Program-made: the position numbers and the translations under genes | The notes under the pieces: model-generated | The model's database searches: none | What the model saw: the letters and a program-made list of their open reading frames with translations, nothing else | Told to the model about the DNA's origin: nothing | DNA from: Neoconidiobolus thromboides FSU 785 | Lineage: Eukaryota > Fungi > Entomophthoromycota | Direction of reading: 5' to 3' | Assembly (NCBI GenBank): GCA_025603075.1 | Contig: MU626298.1 | Location: forward strand, 73,607-137,606 | DNA: 64,000 bases | Shown: positions 398 to 55,573 of the stretch, piece after piece | Layout of the letters: every line of letters begins with the position of its first letter | How positions within the stretch are numbered: position 1 is the stretch's first letter

Positions 398-3300
398 TTA
401 CCCTTGATTTTGTAATACTTTTTCGATACATCTATTAATCAATTCTTTATAAGGTTGCATATCTCTATTTAATTTATTTGCCACTTGATCTCTTACTTGT
501 TTTTTAGTAATTGCCATTAAATCCGCATTTTCTAAAATAATAGCTACTTCATCCATAATTTCGACTTCTAATTGTGTAGCAACGATTGGGCTATTAGATG
601 TAGTGTCATTTGGTGTATCATAACCTAATAACGGTTTTGGAGATTCGGTGCCTGGAACATAATGATGACCCAAATACCCTTGTTGATTTGTATTATCAAA
701 CATACCACTACCGGATCGATTATTGACATTCCTTTGGTAAGGATTCGTTATATTATTATTATTATTAGTTGGCATTGGCATCATTTGATAAGATTCATTT
801 TGTATGTTATTATTATATTGACTCATTGTATTTTTATTTATTATTGTATTATTATTATTATTATTGTTATAAAATTCGGTACTTGGATTATTTATATTTA
901 ATCTTGATCCTGGACGAGAAGCAATATTATTTGGTAACATATTGCCAATAATCATATTAGAAGATCTTGGACCTGAATTCATATTTTGATAAATAGATTG
1001 AGTTGGATTTTGCAATTGATTAGGCTGATATAGCATTGAGTTTGTATTATTGATTGGTGGATAAAAACCAGATTGTGTTTTATTTTGTAAGTTTGATTTT
1101 TTACTTTCATTAGAATATTCCGTTCCTGCTTCCCAGATCTCTTCTTCATATTCGGTCCATTTCTTAGTTGGTATTGTTTTAATATCGAATTTACCTTCAT
1201 CTGCTCCAGATGCAACTATTACTTTTTTACGTTTTCCATTTTCACCAACTACAATTCTAGTTGATCCCCATGAAAAATCATCAAAATGCCAAAAGGAATA
1301 AATTGGTATAAAAAAGGCAAAGATTGGCAATGCTAATAAATAAACAATCATCCAACCAATGTGTTGCCATTGCCTTCTTAATATAAATACGGTCATTTGT
1401 AATACATAAGGTGCTAATATAAATATCAAAGATATAATAGGTATATTACTTGAATCAGTAATTAATCGATATAATAAATAACCCAAATAACCCAATGTAG
1501 CAGGCATTATAATTGTTGATAATAAATCCATAAATACAACAAATCTCATTGAAAAACAACAAAACCCACATAACCTCGGTAAAAATACTAGTTCTAATAA
1601 ATTATGAACAGTTGAATTGATCCATCTTCTTCTTTGAGACAATAAAACATCCCAAGTATCTGGTGCATTAGTTAAACACATAGCATCTGGTGTAAATGTC
1701 ATTTTTTGAAATGGAAAATGTTTTAACATTAAAGTAGTTAAATAACGATCTTCTCCTAAATGTAGCAAATTCTTTTTATGTAATGTATCTACTCGATTTT
1801 CGGAATAATCTGTAATTAATACATTATGTACTAATAAAGGCTGACCTGCTGGTGTCCTTAATCGATACATACAAAAACAACCTGGTAAACAAGTAACAGA
1901 ACCAAATAAAGATTCGAATGCTTTAGCTAAATGATGGGATATATAATATTCATAAACTTGGATCATGGTAGCCCAAGTATCTTTTTCATTAGCTAATGCC
2001 GTTTCTCCACATAATCCCATAATCTTAGTATCATGTAACATAGCAGATACTAACCGATTTAATGAATCCGGCATAACTACAGTATCTGCATCTACCATTA
2101 ATACATATTCATAAAAATGTGGATCTACACCAATTACATTTTTAATTTGATGATACATTTCTAACTCTAAAGGTACCATTGGATGATCATAATGAACTTT
2201 ATTAAAGAACTTCATTAAGATTAGTTGTGAATCTCTTTTTCCTCTGTTTCCTGGTTTAGCTCTTTCTGTAGGTTTACCTACTTTAACAACAACCAAATAA
2301 GGTACTACATGACCATAACATTCATATAAACCAGTATAAACTTTAGCCATATTATGTTGTTTTGAACCTTCCCCTAAAGAATGAAAAGATAATGCTTCAG
2401 GTTCATTATTGGGATCCGATCCTAATATATCCAATACAATTCTTGGTGTAGGTTTATCATTACCACCTCCCATTACCATACCATCAGCTACAATAAATAA
2501 TAATTTACGTTTATCATCGTATTTTAATACGGCTAATGAATCAATTGTTTTCTTTAAAGATTCTTCGCCTTCAGTATAACAAGGTACATTAATAATAACA
2601 AATCGATCATGATCTTCAGGTTCTGGACGAGAACCTAATTGCAGAGATGCTAAAAATTTAACAAATAAAATAGCAAATAAAAAGATAGATAAAGCTAATA
2701 AGATATATTGTGCAAATACGCAACGGAAAGATTGTCGGTCATCTAAAACTCCTGAATAAAATACATTATTTAAACACTGCATTGTTAATGCTTTAGTTTG
2801 TGCATCATTTTGATATAGCTTATTGAATGCTAAAGTAATATCTTTCCCAGATCCAACACGAACCAAATCAATAAAATTAGGGTCCATAAAATCATAACCT
2901 GAAGATGAAGGAGATTGACCAGGTGGTGTTAAAGTATATAAATTGCCAGTAACATAAGAATTTAAATCATATATTTTTTGATTTAATTCTACCCAAAAAT
3001 AACCAGTTGCTGCTTTTTTAGATAATGTAGTTGGATCTACAGCTAAATCACCTGCTTTCATTGTTAATCTCATTCTTTGCATGGCATTTTGATACCAGTC
3101 TGGTTGATAATAATCTGATCCTCGATAATATCGATGATCATGATATTGGGCATTTTTATCTTGAGCACCTAAAGTTGTATTTTGTAAAGAAACTGTTTCA
3201 TCAATAGAGCTACCATCATATCGATTACATAAGGAACTTAGTTGCTGTGGAAATAAATAAGACACGTCATTACCAGCATAAACTTTAATTAACTGAGTTT

Positions 3301-6145
3301 GTTGAGTACCATAATGAGTAGATAAACCTTGTAAATTAAAGACTTGTCCATAAATGGATACCAATGGTTTACTTGCTGTATTAAAAGAATTCACTTCATA
3401 ACTTGAAAAAATTTGACGAGTTGGGCAGATTAAAGGATTAATACCAACAATAAATAAAACTACCAAGGCACATAAAAAGAAAATAAGTAAGCATAAACTA
3501 ACTTTTTCACGCCATGCCATACGAACTTCTTTTAATTTCATTCTTCCACAACAGGATAAAAAGGAAGTAGGCACCCACCAAGTCATTGCCCAAGTAAAAC
3601 AAATCCAAGATTTTCTCACTTTTGTTTTTGGTATATCTTCTTCTTCTTCTTCTTCTTCTTCGATTGCATTTAAATTTAATTGATTTTCTGCTTTAGTTAA
3701 ATGAATTTCCCCATCTTGAGATTGAGAAAATTTACTACCTTTTTCATAAAAAGATAATTGATCTTCATTTAAATTATCATCATCTGAGTAATAAGATTGA
3801 TTGTCATTTAAAAACCCAGTAGGAGAATCTTTATTTAGAGCATTAACTCCTTGTGTTTCTATTACTTTTAAATTATCTTCTAAATCTCTCCAAACACCAT
3901 CACAAAGATAAGTAAATTTATGTCCAATTGCCATATGTTCCGTACCCCAACCAAAACTTTCTCTTGAATTAACTAAAACTGATAAAGGATCATTTTCATC
4001 CACTTCAATTCCCATAGCTATTAAAATTGAAGAATATCTTGTAACAAATTCATTATGCTGATAACAAACAGTATATTCAATTTCTTTACGTTCGGTCATG
4101 TAAACTAATCTATATCTTTCAATTTGTTGTAATATAATTTTACTATCAATATTATCAAACATTCGGTTTTGATTCGAATTAAAACATAATACAAACCAAG
4201 CTTCAGTATTATCAAAAGTATCAAATAATTCATCTAATCCAGTTTGGAATTGAGCTAATGAACCTTGAGGTTTATCTTTGCTATTTTCTTTTAAATTTGC
4301 TTCTTTTTTCTTTTTCATACTTGGTTTACGTAAAGGTACACTTGGTTGTTGTGCAGCTACAATAGCATTCCCATTTTTGGGATTCACTTCAGTATAAACC
4401 GCATCCGAAGTAAATAATCCAGCTACAAATGGATTACCAACTAAAGCATCTGGACCACCACGAAATGTCTGAACAAAATCAGCACCAATAGATGCTCGAT
4501 TTTGTTCCATAAAACCAGCTACTGAATAAGTTATTGGTTGAGTAAAGTGATGAACACAAAATTGGTTATTGCTACGATCTAATTGAAATAAATCTTGATG
4601 AGAATGATTTTTTGCTAAAGAAGTCATCAAGGAGGCATCAGTAGCTGGTCCCTTAACTTTATTGGCTAATTTATCCATAATAGCAACAATACCCGAACTT
4701 GGTTTACCAAGTAGTTGAATTAATGTATGATTATCAGGATATTCTACAATTGGAATAGTAATACCATCTTCTTGATAAGAAGTATTAGAAGCTTCAAATA
4801 CTTGAAAACAACAATAATTAAATAATCTTTCATTAGCATAATTAACACAAAACTGTTCAAAGTTACAAGAAGAATCAGAATAATAAAAACCAGGTAAATC
4901 TAATAAACCAATAAAATTAGCTTGTATATCTTGACAATATTTAGTATTAATATGTTCAATCATCCAAGAAAATAATAAAGAATATAAACATTTAACTAAA
5001 TCATCTCGTTGAATTTTGGCATCTTTAGCATCTAAAAATATAGTACACATTTCTTTTTTAATCATTTGCGTTTTATATGTTAGTAAAGCTTCTAATGTAT
5101 TGGGTAATAAACCTAAAAAATCAGCACAAATATCTAAAATATCGATATTTTTTATCAAGGCAGGTTCATTATTATTGTTTCCATGATTAACAAAATTCAA
5201 ATTTCCTAAATGTAATATTGAAGCTAATAATTGAAAGATTTGACTTTGTGAACGCTGATGAAAACCTAATACTTTTAAAGATTTTTTAAGTTCACTAAAA
5301 CTTTGTTTCAATTCTTCTTGATTGAAATCATTATTAGTATGAGCCAAATAATTAAAACTCACAGCATCACCAAGTTTAAAATGTTCTTTTTCTTGAAGGT
5401 CAACACCAGCTAACAGCATATAAAACACTTTAAAATTACTTTCATTTCTAGGTACATTAACTACTCGGTTTTTAGCTAATAAATAATTTAAAAATTTTAA
5501 ACCATAAACTCGTCCCTTTTTGTCTAATTGTAATTCTAAATATTTGCCAACTTTGGAAGCATTTGGATTTTGAAATGTCTTACAACTACCAAACGCTTGG
5601 AAAACAGCATCCGCTTCTTGAGATGCTTCTAATAACCGTGCTTCTTTACGATGCGTTTTTCGTAATTCAAAATAACAACGTAAAAATTGTTGAAATAAAT
5701 GCGATTTACCAGAGCCAGAATCACCGCTATTAGAAAGAAAAAGAATTAGTTTTAGTTACCAACAATAAAATATAAGAGTTTACTTAAAAATCAAGGTTTG
5801 ATCAATACCTGATCGTTTTAAATGAAAATAAATTACTTTACACAATTGAAAGATATGAGGTTCTAATTCTTGTTGATGATTGACATTATTATTATTTTTT
5901 AAATAATAACCCATCACATCTTCATGAAAGCAAGATAAATCATTATATGGATTAATATATAATAATAAGCGTGCTCCTACTTTAGTGAAATATTGTCGAT
6001 CTTTGAAGCGTAAGTTAAGCGCTTGGTTTAAATACACATCCGTCTTGGGACTCAGAAAAGTTAAGTCTTGAATTTTACCTAGATCATCAATTGAGGACTT
6101 ATCATCTTCGGCAGGGTTTGGGAAGTTAGATAAGTGCTTAGCCAT
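398..6145 (-). CDS. csmA: Class V chitin synthase with N-terminal myosin motor-like domain (~1896 aa, 2 exons: 6145-5784, 5726-398)
   Basis: P-loop GDSGSGKS across the intron, NPNASKVGKY and LDLPGF switch-like motifs, cytochrome b5-like segments, GT2 motifs GEDRYLT and QRRRW, C-terminal DEK-like domain; GT-AG intron 5783-5727 keeps the frame. Confidence 0.96.
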
Positions 6146-50502: not shown

Positions 50503-51042
50503 TTAACAGCATTTAGATTTGGAGCTGCAACAGGCTGAGGTGGTTTTATCAGTGGTACATTCACATGTTTTTGAATCAGATTTGCAGGTTTCGCACTTAC
50601 ACCCTACTTCACAGTTACATCCTTCTTTGGCACAGGCACATTTAGATTTGGAGCTGCAACAGGCTGATTTGGTTTTATTAGTAGTACATTCACATACCTT
50701 TGAATCAGATTTGCAGGTTTCACAGTTACATCCTTCTTCACAATTACATCCTTCTTTGGCACAAGCACAACTAGTTCCTTTGTTTTCTACTTTGCGAGTT
50801 TCACAGTTGCAAGAAGCATCACATTTACAACCATCTTTGCTTCCAGTGCAGGCACAGATCTTGGCTAAAGCTTGAGCCTTTCTGGTTTCACAACTGCATG
50901 AGCTGTCACAATTACAACCACCTTGGCTACCTGTACAGGCGCAGACCAATTCAGCTACTTGGGCTTGGCGAGTGGAGCAGTTGCATGCAGATTGGCAATT
51001 ACAGCCATTGGTGTTTCCAGTACATTTACAAGTTTGAGGCAT
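50503..51042 (-). CDS. Large metallothionein-like protein 1 (179 aa, 42 Cys, no aromatic residues)
   Basis: CxC-rich modular sequence, intronless; three 29-aa and two 43-aa repeats; upstream TATA box. Confidence 0.88.
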   Translation of the reverse strand: MPQTCKCTGNTNGCNCQSACNCSTRQAQVAELVCACTGSQGGCNCDSSCSCETRKAQALAKICACTGSKDGCKCDASCNCETRKVENKGTSCACAKEGCNCEEGCNCETCKSDSKVCECTTNKTKSACCSSKSKCACAKEGCNCEVGCKCETCKSDSKTCECTTDKTTSACCSSKSKCC

Positions 51043-51114
51043 TGGGTTATTATTTAATTGTTGGATTGATTTAAATTGAGATTTTTTAAAGTTAATGACT
51101 ATTCATTTGTTTGC

Positions 51115-51122
51115 TTTATATA
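51115..51122 (-). promoter_or_regulatory. TATA box candidate of MT-like gene 1
   Basis: TATATAAA on the minus strand 73-80 bp upstream of the ATG; weak evidence in an AT-rich background. Confidence 0.45.
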
Positions 51123-51252
51123 CCTAACGTTGCCTTGGGGAACCAATTTATCCAATCATTGATGACGATAAAAGATGGGAATGGTGTCGTAAAGCACAAA
51201 TAATGATTGGCTTAATCCAGGTTTTAGTTGCTTTAAATAAGTCGAGAGGTTA

Positions 51253-51343
51253 ATGCTATTGGTTGGAATAGGAATTGAGTTTGTAAAAAAATGAGTGACA
51301 AATTATCTAAATGTGAGTTAATATGGAATCCAGCCAATAGCAT
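51253..51343. promoter_or_regulatory. Inverted pair of 14-bp CCAAT-containing elements upstream of MT-like gene 1
   Basis: ATGCTATTGGTTGG (51253-51266) and CCAGCCAATAGCAT (51330-51343), 13/14 complementary; the left element is conserved upstream of gene 2. Confidence 0.5.
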
Positions 51344-52303
51344 AAAATTCTCGGTCACTTTTTTCCCCAGCTCAAATGTAAAGATGAAATTGATAACTTA
51401 TTCTCTGTAATAGGGAAAAACAGTTAGATTGATTATTTATGGTTAAAATCCCCTTAGCAGTATGGTTTAGGTTTACTTTATAGGAGCTTAAACATCTTGG
51501 TTTTGTTTTAGTTTAATACAATTTTTTGATTTCTTTTCTAAGATTGTATCAAATAGCTTATTATTATTTATGATATTCGTCTTAGCTTATTCAAACTTCT
51601 AGTATTTTCGATCTAATAGGCATTATTAACCAAGTTTTAATAAATCATAAACATCATGTTTATCATTTAACGAAAATAACCTATACATTCTTCTTCCGCT
51701 CAGTAATTTATTAGTTTCATACTAATTACTATCACTTGGTATTTCTAATCTCATACTATTCGGCAAAAATAGTTCGTTTTTCACAAGTAAACTGAATATA
51801 ACTTCTTTGCGCTATAATCTTAACTAAGATTGAATAGACAATTCAGGTTAAATAATGCAACAATAAGTATTATTTTTGTTAAATGCAGGGATAACTAACT
51901 CCAATCAAACAGGCAATTCTGGGCAGAATGCATGTATTTAACTTTTTATTCAATAATAGTAACTGTTAATAAATCTCAAATCGTCATAGATTAAGAAACT
52001 TTAAAAGGAAATGGATTAAATAGTAGTAGTAATAAATACTTTGAATTTTTTTATTTAAACAGGTACTTTTACCCTTCTCTTTTCAAAAATAGTAAAGTTA
52101 CTAACAGCGAGCTTATCATAAAGCTTTATTTGCACCTTCTCCGATATGTTTTAAACCATATAAATTGTTTTTGAATAATAAAATAAAGTGATATAAAACA
52201 TAAAAATGTGAAAATCCCTTACTTAAAATATTAACCTTCCCTTACCTTTCCTGGCTTTACTAAAGAGTTTTTGTTTTTTGAGAATTCCAGAAAATAAGTA
52301 TAT

Positions 52304-52400
52304 CGGGATGTTTTTTTGTCTTCGTTACTTTTTCCATTTTTAAGCACTATTTGAGTGGAAAGATTATCAGCAAAATTCTTAAGCGAAAAAATACATCCCC
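52304..52400 (-). mobile_element. ~99-bp MITE copy 15
   Basis: CGGGATG...CATCCCC; flanks ATAT/AAAT. Confidence 0.86.
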
Positions 52401-52790
52401 AAATAGTAGATAGGATAGTATACTCAGAACGTTAAGTGACAAAACAGAGTTTTTGATAATGTAATAAAGCTCACTAAATTTTTTAATTATCAATTCATTT
52501 TGGTTTACCACTATAGTAGATAATTTATAAATATAGTAAAACTTAATCTTTCTTACTTTTCTAATTTAATAGAATAATAAATCAAATACAATAAAAAACC
52601 ATGTTATTAGCGAATTAATAAAGTAATATTAAAAAAATGTAAATACAGTAATAGTAAATTAATAAACAGTAAATTAAATCATTGTACTACCCTTTTAAGC
52701 ATTAAAATAGCTTCTAAAAAACTAATTATATAGTTCAAATATTTGTGTTATATTTAAAGGCACTTATAAGTTTATTATTAATACTTGAAT

Positions 52791-53330
52791 TTAACAGTAT
52801 TTGAATCTGGAGCTGCTGCAGTCTAAAGTAGTCTTACAAGTGATACACTCACATACATTTGAGTCCGATTTGCAGGTTCTGCAGCTACATTCTATTTTAC
52901 AATTACATCCATCTTTAGCACAGATGCACTTATATTTGGGGTTCGAATAAGTTAAAGTAGTATTATCAGCGATACACTCACATGTTTTTGAATCAGATTT
53001 GCAGGTTTCACAGTTACATCCTTCTTCACAATTACATCCTTCTTTGGCACAAGCACAACTAGTTCCTTTGTTTTCTACTTTGCGAGTTTCACAGTTGCAA
53101 GAAGCATCACATTTACAACCATCTTTGCTTCCAGTGCAGGCACAGATCTTGGCTAAAGCTTGAGCCTTTCTGGTTTCACAACTGCATGAGCTGTCACAAT
53201 TACAACCACCTTGGCTACCTGTACAGGCGCAGACCAATTCAGCTACTTGGGCTTGGCGAGTGGAGCAGTTGCATGCAGATTGGCAATTACAGCCATTGGT
53301 GTTTCCAGTACATTTACAAGCTTGAGGCAT
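52791..53330 (-). CDS. Large metallothionein-like protein 2 (179 aa, 39 Cys)
   Basis: Paralogue of 50503-51042: first 115 aa identical except residue 4, C-terminal third diverged with Tyr/Phe. Confidence 0.87.
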   Translation of the reverse strand: MPQACKCTGNTNGCNCQSACNCSTRQAQVAELVCACTGSQGGCNCDSSCSCETRKAQALAKICACTGSKDGCKCDASCNCETRKVENKGTSCACAKEGCNCEEGCNCETCKSDSKTCECIADNTTLTYSNPKYKCICAKDGCNCKIECSCRTCKSDSNVCECITCKTTLDCSSSRFKYC

Positions 53331-54352
53331 CTTGGATTATTGATAGATTATTTATTTTATTGTTTTTGATTGTTTTGATTGTTTTTAGTAAGCTTTATGA
53401 CCTTCATCTCGATTATTTTTATACTCTGTGTTGACTTTCAACAATTTAAGTTTAAATTAATCGATTAATTATGGCGATAAAGACACGAATAGTATCGAGA
53501 GGTATAGATAGTGACTGCCGTAACACAATCATTGGTAAAATAATTGCGAGCTTAATGCTATTGGTTGAAACGACAATAAATTTCAAAATAGTGAATGATA
53601 AAATATCTAAAAATGAGTTGATACAGAATACAGTTAATAATAACTTCTAATCACTTTATTTTCTAAGTTCGAATGTAAAAATGAGTTTGATGACATTTGT
53701 TCTTCTCGATATAAGAGTAGCGGTTAGTTTCTTCATTTATAGTTAAAATACACTATAAAAATATTGCTTGGCTCTTTGTTAATATATCAAGTGCAATGAT
53801 TCGGTGTGGGTTGATTTAATACTAAATAAACTTACATTATTAAAGGTTAGCCAATACGGCTATATCAAATGTTAAAAACAATAAGGTTTGGTAATCTGTA
53901 ATTAAAGTTATAAATAGTTACAAACTACTAAATTTTAAATACTATATTTGTTATTTAGTGAAAACAACTCACTTTATTTATCTTCTGCTTAATTGCTCAT
54001 ATATTCTATATTAGTCATTATCATTCGTCATTTCCACTTTTAGATTATTCAGCAAAAATAACTCATTTTTTAAAGTTGTATTTTGTCAGTTTGCCACTCA
54101 TTGCTACAAAATAAGATGAAACAGCCAAGCTACCTTAAACACCAAAATAACATGTACTAATTTTCCAAATATAGGGATAACCTAGCTTTGATTAAACTAA
54201 AAATTTGAGTAAGATTGATGACTGGTTTTTCATTCAATGGTAGCAACTTTTTTTAAAGTTTCAAATCGTCATAAACTGGAGAAATTTAAAAAAGGATGAG
54301 CTGAACAATAAAAATAACAAATTAAGTTTACTTTTGATTATAGCCAATATAA

Positions 54353-55573
54353 ATGAGAATAAATAAATCTACAATAGTATTGATCACCTCAATAACCCTA
54401 TTGACCATCGTTTATTTTCACTTGAAGTCAATCTTAGCTACCGAAGAACAAACTTTAAACAGTCTAAGATCTGGTTCAAATAGAGTTCGCGGCATAATTG
54501 TCATAATGTGTCGCAACAGCGATCTTTCAGGCATGGTATCGACATTAAAAGAATTTGAACTTAACTTCAATGACCAATTCAACTATCCTTATTTATTTTT
54601 AAATGAAATTGAGTTTACTATGGAGTTTAAAACCACCATTTTGAAACATACTAAAAGTAAAGTAATATTTTCAAAAATTGAAGAAGAGTTATGGGAAATA
54701 CCTAAATCAGTGAATCAAACCTTAATGACTATAAAGATGCAAGAATTGAAATATCAAAACATTAGTTATGCAGATTCAGTGAGTTATAGATTAATGTGTC
54801 GATACCAATCGTATTATTTATTCCAACATAAAGAGGTAGTAAATTATGACTATGTTATGCGGATTGAACCAGACACCCATTTCTTTTGTAAGACTAAGTA
54901 CGACTTGTTTGATTATATGAAGAGAAACCAATTGAGCTATGGGTTTTCTATCACTTTAAAAGAGATTCCAGAAACGATTCCAACTCTTTTTGATACAATT
55001 ACAAAGTATATCAAACAGACAAAATTAACAGTCAATAGCGATCTATTTCCTTTCTTTTTAAAACAAGCTGACAAAAAAGATTTGGATCATATCGAATTTC
55101 AACAAAGAATAGGTGATATTCTATTTTTTTAATTTTTTTACTACTAATTCGTATCTTTAGGCAAAACAAACCTCTATCAGCCTCTCACATATAACTTATG
55201 TCATTTCTGGACCAACTTTCATATCATAGATACTAACTTTATTAAAAGCAATACATACAAAAAATATTTCAAGTACTTGGAAGACAATAACAATTATTTT
55301 TATGAGCGATGGGGGGATGCGCCAGTCATTTCCTTAGGACTTGGTTTGTTTAGAAATGCTTCTCAAATCCATCATTTTTCTGACTTGGGCTACCAACATG
55401 ATAAATTTGTCACCTGCCCTAATAACCCATTAATTGAAGTAGGCGTGGAATCACGTTGTAGATGTCCAATCAATTTCAAAGAGTTTTTTTATGATCCTGG
55501 CTCCTGTTTACCAAGATTTAAAAATTATGAAAAAATTGAGTTTAAAAAGGAACATGTTGATTTACTAGTTTAA
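54353..55573 (+). CDS. Alpha-1,2-mannosyltransferase, GT15 (KRE2/KTR/MNT1 family), 1 intron
   Basis: Type II membrane anchor; RNSDL, YPYLFLNE, SYRLMCRY, RIEPDT, YNLCHFWTNF, FYERWGDAPV. Confidence 0.93.

Follow-up and report, generated by a model that had tools for sequence, protein, structure and literature searches.

Metallothioneins stay unfolded until their cysteine thiolates wrap metal ions, and their genes often lack annotation. Long metallothioneins are rare; in Cryptococcus, CnMT1 and CnMT2 are virulence factors against host copper. In the literature searched, the only long fungal metallothioneins are CnMT1 and CnMT2 of Cryptococcus neoformans (122 and 183 aa) and TmMT of Tremella mesenterica (257 aa), all from Tremellomycetes; they are Cu-thioneins assembled from N. 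crassa-like 7-Cys boxes, and TmMT mixes 7-Cys and 6-Cys boxes (PMC4755600). The heptaCys pattern of Neurospora and Agaricus is CxC-x5-CxC-x3-CxC-x2-C (PMC4755600), and the metallothioneins of N. crassa and Agaricus bisporus (26 aa, 7 Cys) constitute Binz-Kagi family 8. Metallothioneins made of two submodule types have already been described in Tetrahymena, and CxC and CC motifs can arise by convergence (PMC1808422). We analysed a pair of Cys-rich genes, MT1 and MT2, found in a window of 64,000 nucleotides (the whole stretch of DNA under study) from a Zoopagomycota fungus.

Results

Gene structure and composition

Two uninterrupted, ATG-started ORFs of 179 codons plus stop were located side by side on the minus strand, in agreement with the original prediction of a tandem gene pair. 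The genes and their units are listed below.

50503-51042, minus strand: MT1 coding sequence of 179 codons and a stop; the protein (18.5 kDa, pI 8.0) has 42 Cys
50953-51039, minus strand: MT1 unit A1 (aa 2-30), block of 6 Cys and its linker, Arg (CGC) standing in for the seventh Cys
50866-50952, minus strand: MT1 unit A2 (aa 31-59), block of 6 Cys and its linker, Arg (AGA) standing in for the seventh Cys
50779-50865, minus strand: MT1 unit A3 (aa 60-88), block of 6 Cys and its linker, Arg (CGC) standing in for the seventh Cys
50650-50778, minus strand: MT1 unit B1 (aa 89-131), heptaCys core plus 4-Cys extension, 11 Cys
50521-50649, minus strand: MT1 unit B2 (aa 132-174), 11-Cys composite module, 86% nucleotide identity with B1
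50506-50520, minus strand: MT1 C-terminal tail KSKCC, repeating the start of a B unit and terminated by CC
52791-53330, minus strand: MT2 coding sequence of 179 codons and a stop; the protein has 39 Cys and four aromatic residues (3 Tyr, 1 Phe)
53067-53327, minus strand: MT2 units A1'-A3' (aa 2-88), protein identical to MT1 apart from T4A
52809-53066, minus strand: MT2 units B1' and B2' (aa 89-174), heptaCys cores retained, extensions without CC and with aromatics

In-frame stop codons precede both ATGs and, judging from the continuity of the ORFs, both genes are probably intronless. The ORFs are beyond chance because a 180-codon ORF is improbable in DNA of about 25% GC, because the GC content of the coding sequences (43%) exceeds that of the flanks (22-28%), because the paralogs differ in frame with an omega of 0.32, and because only these two genes gave genuine matches when the whole genome was scanned for three spaced CxC pairs. 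The opposite strand of MT1 carries an ORF of 118 aa, the MT2 counterpart of which is split in two. The remaining matches of the genome scan were rejected as simple repeats or an antisense artefact. Candidate L021 was an antisense ORF across a trypsin-like gene, candidate L005 a Cys patch ending a larger protein, and candidates L024-L027 low-complexity stretches of the (TGT)n type.

Metallothioneins are defined here operationally by a Cys content of roughly 15-30% arranged in CxC, CC or CxxC, by few or no aromatic and His residues, by a cytosolic location with no secretion signal and by metal-thiolate clusters on which folding depends. Cys represents 42 of the 179 residues of MT1 (23.5%), 34 of them in CxC and 6 in CC (40/42 in one or the other), and 39 of the 179 residues of MT2 (21.8%), 34 of them in CxC. 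MT1 contains no Phe, Trp, Tyr or His; MT2 is also devoid of His, and its 3 Tyr and 1 Phe all fall within the diverged C-terminal third. As read from the ATG of the uninterrupted ORF, the N-terminus is polar and no hydrophobic stretch is present: the Kyte-Doolittle maximum over a 9-residue window is 1.84, within a linker, and the mean of the first 25 aa is -0.7. These values reproduce the counts of the original prediction (42 Cys and no aromatic or His residue in MT1, 39 Cys in MT2) and are compatible with its assignment of long modular metallothioneins without a signal peptide. AlphaFold2 gave no confident fold (mean pLDDT 38), as expected for an apo-metallothionein.

Unit architecture

Each protein consists of three 29-aa A units, then two 43-aa B units and a short tail, which is KSKCC in MT1. 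The A unit is CxC-x6-CxC-x3-CxC followed by a linker. In MT1, the 11 Cys of the B unit, CxC-x4-CxC-x3-CxC-x2-C-x6-CxC-x8-CC, are distributed between a heptaCys core (CxC-x4-CxC-x3-CxC-x2-C) and a 4-Cys extension (x6-CxC-x8-CC). This is the arrangement that had been proposed, with the addition of the KSKCC tail; the proposed 129-bp duplication in MT1 was likewise recovered by Tandem Repeats Finder (period of 129 nt, 2.0 copies, 90% matches, 50510-50769, covering B1 and B2). The claim of two different module types was not supported: A and B are not independent since their cores (A1-A3 and B1) constitute one DNA repeat family, 62-77% identical. At the position of the seventh Cys, the A units carry Arg ('CNCETRK' versus 'CNCETCK'), encoded by CGC, AGA and CGC in A1, A2 and A3 versus TGC, and CGC and TGC are one base apart. 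The A unit is a block of the B type in which the seventh Cys is replaced by Arg.

Divergence of the two paralogs

The two genes share a tract of perfect identity.

50699-51032, minus strand: MT1 side of the tract, 334 nt, codons 4-114, identical to MT2 52987-53320
52987-53320, minus strand: MT2 side of the tract, 334 nt, identical to MT1 50699-51032

In the 5' part, dS between MT1 and MT2 is 0 over 68 synonymous sites, versus 0.87 in the 3' part, where omega is 0.32 and where Cys (13 of 17 retained) is better conserved than the remaining residues (22 of 48; p=0.046). These figures indicate purifying selection on both copies where they differ. The pair is an old tandem duplication, and gene conversion has homogenised the 5' two-thirds of its members. 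MT2 lacks all three CC pairs. At the module ends (final 49 nt), the two units of MT1 share 86% identity whereas those of MT2 match every other unit at only 59-71%, and the internal 129-nt repeat is no longer found by Tandem Repeats Finder in MT2. The C-terminal third of MT2 seems to be drifting from an ideal metallothionein composition.

Promoter regions

Each gene is preceded by a TATA-like box and by the same CCAAT-containing block.

51116-51122, minus strand: TATA-like box preceding the MT1 start codon by about 80 nt
51250-51265, minus strand: 16-nt CCAAT-containing block upstream of MT1, identical to the one upstream of MT2
53417-53423, minus strand: TATA-like box preceding the MT2 start codon by about 93 nt
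53552-53567, minus strand: 16-nt CCAAT-containing block upstream of MT2, identical to the one upstream of MT1

No ACE1/CuSE (Cuf1), Mac1 CuRE, MRE, Zap1 ZRE, STRE, Yap1 or HSE site is conserved across the two promoters; a single ACE1-like match was found, upstream of MT1 only, with 0.3 expected by chance. A single gene for a copper-fist transcription factor, the body of which is rich in Cys, lies in the genome at G000:C19:143066-143179, and the usual class of fungal Cu-sensing regulator is therefore present.

Searches for relatives

No Pfam match was obtained at E≤1 or E≤10 with the whole protein or with each half, and none in the PDB sequence search at E≤10. A word-indexed protein search gave no match with the whole MT1, with the last B unit plus tail or with the MT1-MT2 alignment at E≤10. 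With phmmer against 1.84 billion representatives, 0 matches were returned and the query did not even find itself; the composition filters of HMMER suppress Cys-rich matches, so that searches built on it can hardly see proteins of this kind. The exact MT1 and MT2 sequences are absent from a collection of 15 billion proteins, the ESM Atlas returned only sub-threshold and uninformative neighbours (0.76), and metagenome scans with MT1 and with the B-unit alignment revealed no relative. These blank searches point to the lack of a close annotated relative rather than proving absence. As no sequence relative was found, the family assignment is drawn solely from composition and Cys spacing, features that may also arise by convergence. 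In the literature, no metallothionein described from Conidiobolus was found, and among the papers listed by a broader search on early-diverging fungi none concerned a metallothionein.

Discussion

With a probability of about 70%, MT1 and MT2 are cytosolic metallothioneins derived from a repeatedly duplicated fungal heptaCys unit, with Cu(I) as the favoured metal and with gene conversion acting on the tandem pair. According to this scheme, the common fungal heptaCys unit would have been duplicated repeatedly within each gene; three older copies would have lost the seventh Cys, giving 6-Cys boxes spaced by linkers of roughly 8 residues, and two younger copies would bear the additional CxC...CC segment, giving 11-Cys modules. 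Since the old tandem duplication, gene conversion has kept the 5' two-thirds of the genes identical. The examples of N. crassa MT, CnMT1/2 and TmMT lead us to expect a separate Cu(I)-thiolate cluster in each box, with a load of about Cu4 per 6-Cys box and Cu5 per 7-Cys box; this would amount to roughly 30 Cu(I) per MT1 molecule, with some capacity for Cd or Zn.

The sequences themselves show the anatomy of the proteins, how the repeats are related, the conversion tract, the purifying selection and the missing signal peptide; it is by analogy with characterised metallothioneins that we infer metal binding, Cu preference, stoichiometry and regulation. Cu(I) is the best guess for the preferred metal. 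In Tetrahymena, metallothioneins dominated by CxC and poor in CC are of the Cu type (PMC1808422), and the long heptaCys fungal metallothioneins characterised are all Cu-thioneins (PMC4755600). Many Agaricomycete heptaCys metallothioneins protect against Cd or Zn too (PMC12508003), so that a preference for Cu is not assured. The lack of a conserved ACE1/Cuf1, Mac1 or MRE-type site in the two promoters counts against the preferred explanation, as do the four aromatic residues and missing CC pairs of MT2.

These peculiarities of MT2 could be explained differently if MT2 were a decaying copy, with relaxed selection on its C-terminal third and a 5' part that seems intact only through continued overwriting from MT1, the sole working metallothionein. 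The loss of the three CC pairs, the four aromatic residues (3 Tyr, 1 Phe) gained outside the converted region, the low identity of the module ends and the undetected 129-nt repeat are compatible with such a decay. We nevertheless consider it unlikely: the ORF is intact and exactly as long as that of MT1, the diverged part combines an omega of 0.32 with 13 of 17 Cys kept, a TATA-like box of its own and the shared CCAAT block precede MT2, and specialisation of paralogs (constitutive versus inducible, or for different metals) is common in fungal metallothionein pairs (PMC12508003). That neither protein is a metallothionein at all is very improbable. The ORFs might encode a disulfide-rich protein that is secreted or placed in the cell wall, a protein with a zinc-dependent role in structure or regulation, or a redox or sulfur store, or might be unexpressed, and the assignment is indeed anchored by no Pfam, PDB or database relative, the exact sequences are absent from the 15-billion-protein collection and no known metal-responsive promoter element is conserved. 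However, the proteins have neither a signal peptide nor a hydrophobic segment, AlphaFold2 predicts no fold, and the CxC-dominated spacing, the small or polar residues and the lack of aromatics typify metal-thiolate clusters and not disulfide knots. Purifying selection and the maintenance of two copies argue for real genes, and the ORF opposite to MT1 is broken in MT2.

A further reading, that of the original prediction, treats MT1 as a two-domain, two-metal chelator in which the three 6-Cys boxes (A region, 18 Cys) and the two 11-Cys modules with the tail (B region, 24 Cys) are functionally distinct and bind different metals, for instance Cu(I) versus Zn or Cd, or one metal with different affinity or kinetics. 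The regions do differ in Cys density and motifs, CC pairs being confined to the B region, and CC-rich modules are associated with Cd in Tetrahymena (PMC1808422). Through the conversion tract the paralogs have retained identical A regions and first B cores, whereas their B extensions have diverged, which hints at different constraints, and the second half of the B unit shares its motif order with the C-terminal half of Cup1. Set against this, one and the same unit of heptaCys origin makes up both the A and the B cores, the mixed 6- and 7-Cys boxes of CnMT and TmMT are additive with one metal, Cu (PMC4755600), and neither His nor any other hallmark of divalent-metal binding is present; a division of MT1 into two metal domains thus seems distinctly unlikely. 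We would be similarly doubtful of a bolder proposal, in which the B module would be a new lineage-specific domain forming one larger, Cup1-sized cluster rather than a Cu5 box with loose thiols, MT1 a two-domain high-capacity chelator and the pair a Cu-detoxification virulence factor of an entomophthoralean insect pathogen, paralleling CnMT1/2.

If MT1 and MT2 are cytosolic Cu-metallothioneins, as preferred here, they (179 aa, with 42 Cys in MT1) would rank among the longest fungal metallothioneins and would be, within the literature searched, the first from early-diverging fungal lineages. The pair would also be a clean natural case of gene conversion preserving part of a metallothionein paralog pair. 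The host is probably an early-diverging, insect-killing fungus; if it is truly an insect pathogen, it would offer a second system for the role of copper detoxification in infection. Both proteins are easy to test since the ORFs are short and uninterrupted.

Compared with known systems, the long hierarchical metallothioneins of Tetrahymena (family 7, 96-181 aa) resemble MT1 and MT2 in having modules composed of two submodule types and joined by linkers of a few residues (PMC1808422), but their elementary motifs differ (C2X6, CKCXXCKC, CCC), they belong to ciliates and the searches detected no relationship in sequence. The second half of the B unit (CxC-x2-C-x6-CxC-x8-CC) and the C-terminal half of Saccharomyces cerevisiae Cup1 of family 12 (CxC-x3-C-x5-CxC-x10-CC; sequence from PMC4755600) have the same motif order, CxC, C, CxC and a terminal CC in a Lys/Ser-rich tail, with 9 residues between the two CxC in both and otherwise different spacings. 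The lack of a Pfam match at E≤10 means that there was none to the yeast metallothionein model (Yeast_MT) either, and this likeness is a resemblance only.

The Cys pattern of the cores is close to that of N. crassa, A. bisporus and the Agaricomycete heptaCys metallothioneins, and in both the residues between Cys are small and polar (Gly, Ser, Asn, Ala). The match is near and not exact: the first spacer is off by one residue, x4 in the B cores and x6 in the A cores (CxC-x6-CxC-x3-CxC-x2-Arg) instead of x5, and each chain contains five cores, three of them with Arg at the seventh position. Similarity to family 8 gave no matches in phmmer, word, PDB or Pfam searches, a weak test for Cys-biased units of 20 residues, on which homology is statistically unprovable.

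The construction of MT1 and MT2 matches that of CnMT1/2 and TmMT: a unit of the form CxC-x(n)-CxC-x3-CxC-x2-C is amplified in tandem, Cys-free spacers lie between the boxes, CxC motifs predominate and, as in TmMT, 6-Cys boxes occur beside 7-Cys ones (PMC4755600); five tandem boxes per protein, with spacers and internal duplication (the DNA repeat family and the 129-nt B1/B2 duplication), were found here, and the length is similar to that of CnMT2 (179 versus 183 aa). They differ by an undetectable sequence similarity, by the first spacer of x4 or x6, by the additional x6-CxC-x8-CC in two units, by the lack of introns deduced from the ORFs (9 introns in TmMT), by the homogenisation of the pair by gene conversion and by the host, a Zoopagomycota fungus instead of a Tremellomycete. 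Since they repeat the 7-Cys unit of other fungal metal-binding proteins, MT1 and MT2 vary an established design; they do not represent an invention of their own. The architecture announced as unfamiliar is therefore so only in part: the cores are near the Neurospora/Agaricus pattern, and what is genuinely new is the x6-CxC-x8-CC tail giving an 11-Cys module, together with the probably intronless genes and the Zoopagomycota host. The independent origin that had been suggested for these long metallothioneins similarly applies to the amplification and not to the unit, which is the common fungal one; since no relatives were found, a separate amplification in this lineage is plausible, and the heptaCys unit would then have been amplified in a phylum distant from the Tremellomycetes, probably as a separate event and with a new composite module.

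Two neighbouring cysteine-rich genes and their genomic setting

Two open reading frames of the window, spaced by 2,288 nt, code for long Cys-rich proteins, MT1 and MT2, built from two kinds of repeated units and a short tail.

50503-51042, minus strand: MT1, 540 nt, 179 codons, ATG start
52791-53330, minus strand: MT2, 540 nt, 179 codons, ATG start
Residues 2-88: three A units of 29 residues, CxC-x6-CxC-x3-CxC followed by a Cys-free linker (e.g. ETRKAQAL)
Residues 89-174: two B units of 43 residues, CxC-x4-CxC-x3-CxC-x2-C-x6-CxC-x8-CC
After the B units: C-terminal tail, KSKCC

MT1 contains 42 Cys (23.5%), of which 34 belong to CxC motifs and 6 to CC pairs, and is devoid of Phe, Trp, Tyr and His. 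MT2 contains 39 Cys (21.8%), 34 in CxC motifs and none in CC pairs, together with three Tyr and one Phe. In both genes in-frame stops are found upstream of the ATG, and neither protein has a hydrophobic N-terminus. The long plus-strand ORF running across MT1 is broken in MT2, indicating that it is the minus frame which has been conserved. The coding sequences have a GC content of 43% versus 22-28% in the surrounding region. An AlphaFold2 prediction from the two-sequence alignment gave a mean pLDDT of 38 and a pTM of 0.18; this low confidence is consistent with, and no proof of, a protein which folds only around metal.

The gene content of the window is fungal. A 1,676-aa open frame (398-5428, minus strand) codes for a chitin synthase of class V/VII type that also has a myosin motor head, a cytochrome b5 domain and a DEK_C domain. 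As the match to the myosin profile begins only at position 193, there is likely another exon upstream. This gene marks the genome as that of a non-yeast fungus. Divergently from MT2, a GT15 (Kre2/Ktr-type) alpha-1,2-mannosyltransferase ORF (54353-55132, plus strand) matches profile positions 56-261 of 325 and therefore probably extends past an intron. A class 3 lipase is also encoded.

Repeat relationships and history of the pair

The unit spacings and the 129-nt repeat of the original prediction were reproduced: Tandem Repeats Finder detected the B1/B2 duplication at 50510-50769 (period 129 nt, 2.0 copies, 90% matches), as well as an 18-nt mini-repeat coding twice for EGCNCE within the B core. 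The A unit ends in C-N-C-E-T-R-K and the corresponding B segment in C-N-C-E-T-C-K. At this seventh position, A1, A2 and A3 use the Arg codons CGC, AGA and CGC and both B units use TGC, a single transition away from CGC. Furthermore, the repeat finder assigned the cores of A1, A2, A3 and B1, from MT1 and MT2 alike, to one 61-nt DNA family (62-77% identity). Taken together, the similar spacing, the Arg/Cys codons and the common DNA family argue that the A and B units derive from a single ancestral heptaCys unit, the 7-Cys unit of Neurospora/Agaricus type, and have since diverged. Synonymous sites are saturated among the A units, whose duplications must consequently be ancient; between B1 and B2 of MT1, dS is 0.31.

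Over their first 344 nt the MT1 and MT2 coding sequences show a single difference, against 56 in the last 196 nt, and a tract of 334 nt is perfectly identical (50699-51032 in MT1, 52987-53320 in MT2). The flanks are hardly alignable, apart from a 160-nt upstream block (74% identity) and a 48-nt downstream block (81%). By the Nei-Gojobori method, dS is 0 over 68 synonymous sites for codons 1-114, and codons 115-179 give dS = 0.87, dN = 0.28 and omega = 0.32. These values point to an old tandem duplication whose 5' two-thirds were recently gene-converted, and to purifying selection on the diverged 3' part, where Cys are kept at 13 of 17 positions versus 22 of 48 for other residues (Fisher p = 0.046). 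Over the final 49 nt of the B modules, the two MT1 copies are 86% alike, and those of MT2 share 59-71% identity with any other unit. Either the MT2 tail would be evolving faster or the MT1 B units would have been homogenised. That MT2, with its fewer Cys and lost CC pairs, is a decaying copy is possible; the omega of its diverged part and the preferential retention of Cys speak against this reading.

Searches for relatives

No relative was found in Pfam, in PDB sequences, in three word-indexed protein searches, in two metagenome scans or when 1.84 billion representatives were searched in full with phmmer. The phmmer search gave no self-match either, as the exact MT1 and MT2 sequences are absent from the 15-billion-protein collection. 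The ESM Atlas contains the exact MT1 sequence, and no relative was found in it. HMMER filters penalise Cys-biased sequences. As metallothionein genes are moreover often overlooked by annotation (PMC4755600), and no fungal genome collection was among the sets searched, these blanks are weak evidence. In the host genome (24.6 Mb, 799 contigs), MT1 and MT2 are the only copies, and no further genuine candidate emerged when the genome was scanned for three spaced CxC pairs.

Other Cys-rich loci were met there. An 81-aa ORF with 26 Cys (L021, G000:C42:90332-90385) was rejected as an antisense artefact: on the other strand, the sequence codes for a serine protease of trypsin type and, after it, a repeat rich in Pro and Gln. 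An open frame of 60 aa (L024, G000:C58:10321-10455, minus strand) consists of (C-D/N/G)n dipeptides, contains 21 Cys and lacks a start codon; it represents either a microsatellite of TGTGAT type or one exon of an unknown protein with Cys repeats. A larger Gln-rich protein (L005, G000:C2:208919-208969, plus strand) ends in a Cys patch (CC...C...CxCC...CxC...CxC) that looks like a metal-binding tail of a non-metallothionein protein.

Promoters and candidate regulator

A TATA-like box lies 80-93 nt upstream of each gene. A 16-nt CCAAT-containing block, identical at 51250-51265 (MT1) and 53552-53567 (MT2), about 210-235 nt upstream and within otherwise diverged sequence, may be a CCAAT-complex site. 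CCAAT motifs are commoner than chance upstream of both genes (5 and 3 versus 1.2 expected), with more boxes within 51043-51742. No ACE1/CuSE, Mac1-CuRE or MRE consensus is conserved between the two promoters. Copper-fist factors are the regulator class driving metallothionein genes in yeasts and Cryptococcus. The single copper-fist domain of the genome (PF00649, 73.9 bits; L023, G000:C19:143066-143179, minus strand) is followed by a 374-aa open frame with 39 Cys in CC/CxC patches; it likely belongs to a Cu-sensing transcription factor, a candidate regulator of the pair.

Proposed function and comparison with known metallothioneins

We consider that MT1 and MT2 are metallothioneins (probability about 0.7), with Cu(I) slightly favoured as their main metal. 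They would act as high-capacity cytosolic thiolate chelators, each Cys box nucleating its own metal cluster by analogy with the long metallothioneins of Cryptococcus neoformans (CnMT1/2) and Tremella mesenterica (TmMT). Such separate clusters have been demonstrated in CnMT and suggested in TmMT, with Cu5 per 7-Cys and Cu4 per 6-Cys box (PMC4755600). On this basis the MT1 cores would bind 3x4 + 2x5 = 22 Cu, plus the contribution of the 10 remaining Cys; scaling from TmMT (57 Cys, Cu40-45; PMC4755600) would give about 30 Cu(I). The original prediction also raised the idea of a two-domain, two-metal chelator. This is possible but less likely, and the common origin suggested for the A and B units speaks against it.

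The assignment to metallothioneins made in that prediction is plausible and its description of the proteins stands, but the novelty of the modules was overstated: in the repeat architecture that it called unfamiliar, the cores are close to the heptaCys pattern, and A and B cores belong to one DNA family. The Neurospora/Agaricus pattern, [CXC]-X5-[CXC]-X3-[CXC]-X2-C, is amplified in CnMT1/2 and TmMT (PMC4755600). The B core departs from it solely in its first spacer, which is 4 residues long and not 5; the A unit has a spacer of 6 and Arg in place of the seventh Cys. TmMT, with six 7-Cys and two 6-Cys boxes (PMC4755600), mixes both types as MT1 and MT2 do. For Tetrahymena, metallothioneins made up of two kinds of submodule have been described before (PMC1808422). 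Literature searches combining metallothionein with Conidiobolus or with early-diverging fungi returned no description of one. In contrast to the cores, the x6-CxC-x8-CC segment by which the B unit is extended has no counterpart in CnMT1/2 or TmMT. Read from the third core CxC to its end, the B unit has a motif order like the C-terminal half of Saccharomyces cerevisiae Cup1 (CxC-x3-C-x5-CxC-x10-CC, from the sequence printed in PMC4755600), a resemblance only. MT1 and MT2 would represent a variant within the known group of long, modular metallothioneins that fungi have built from the heptaCys unit, with the 11-Cys composite module as the new element.
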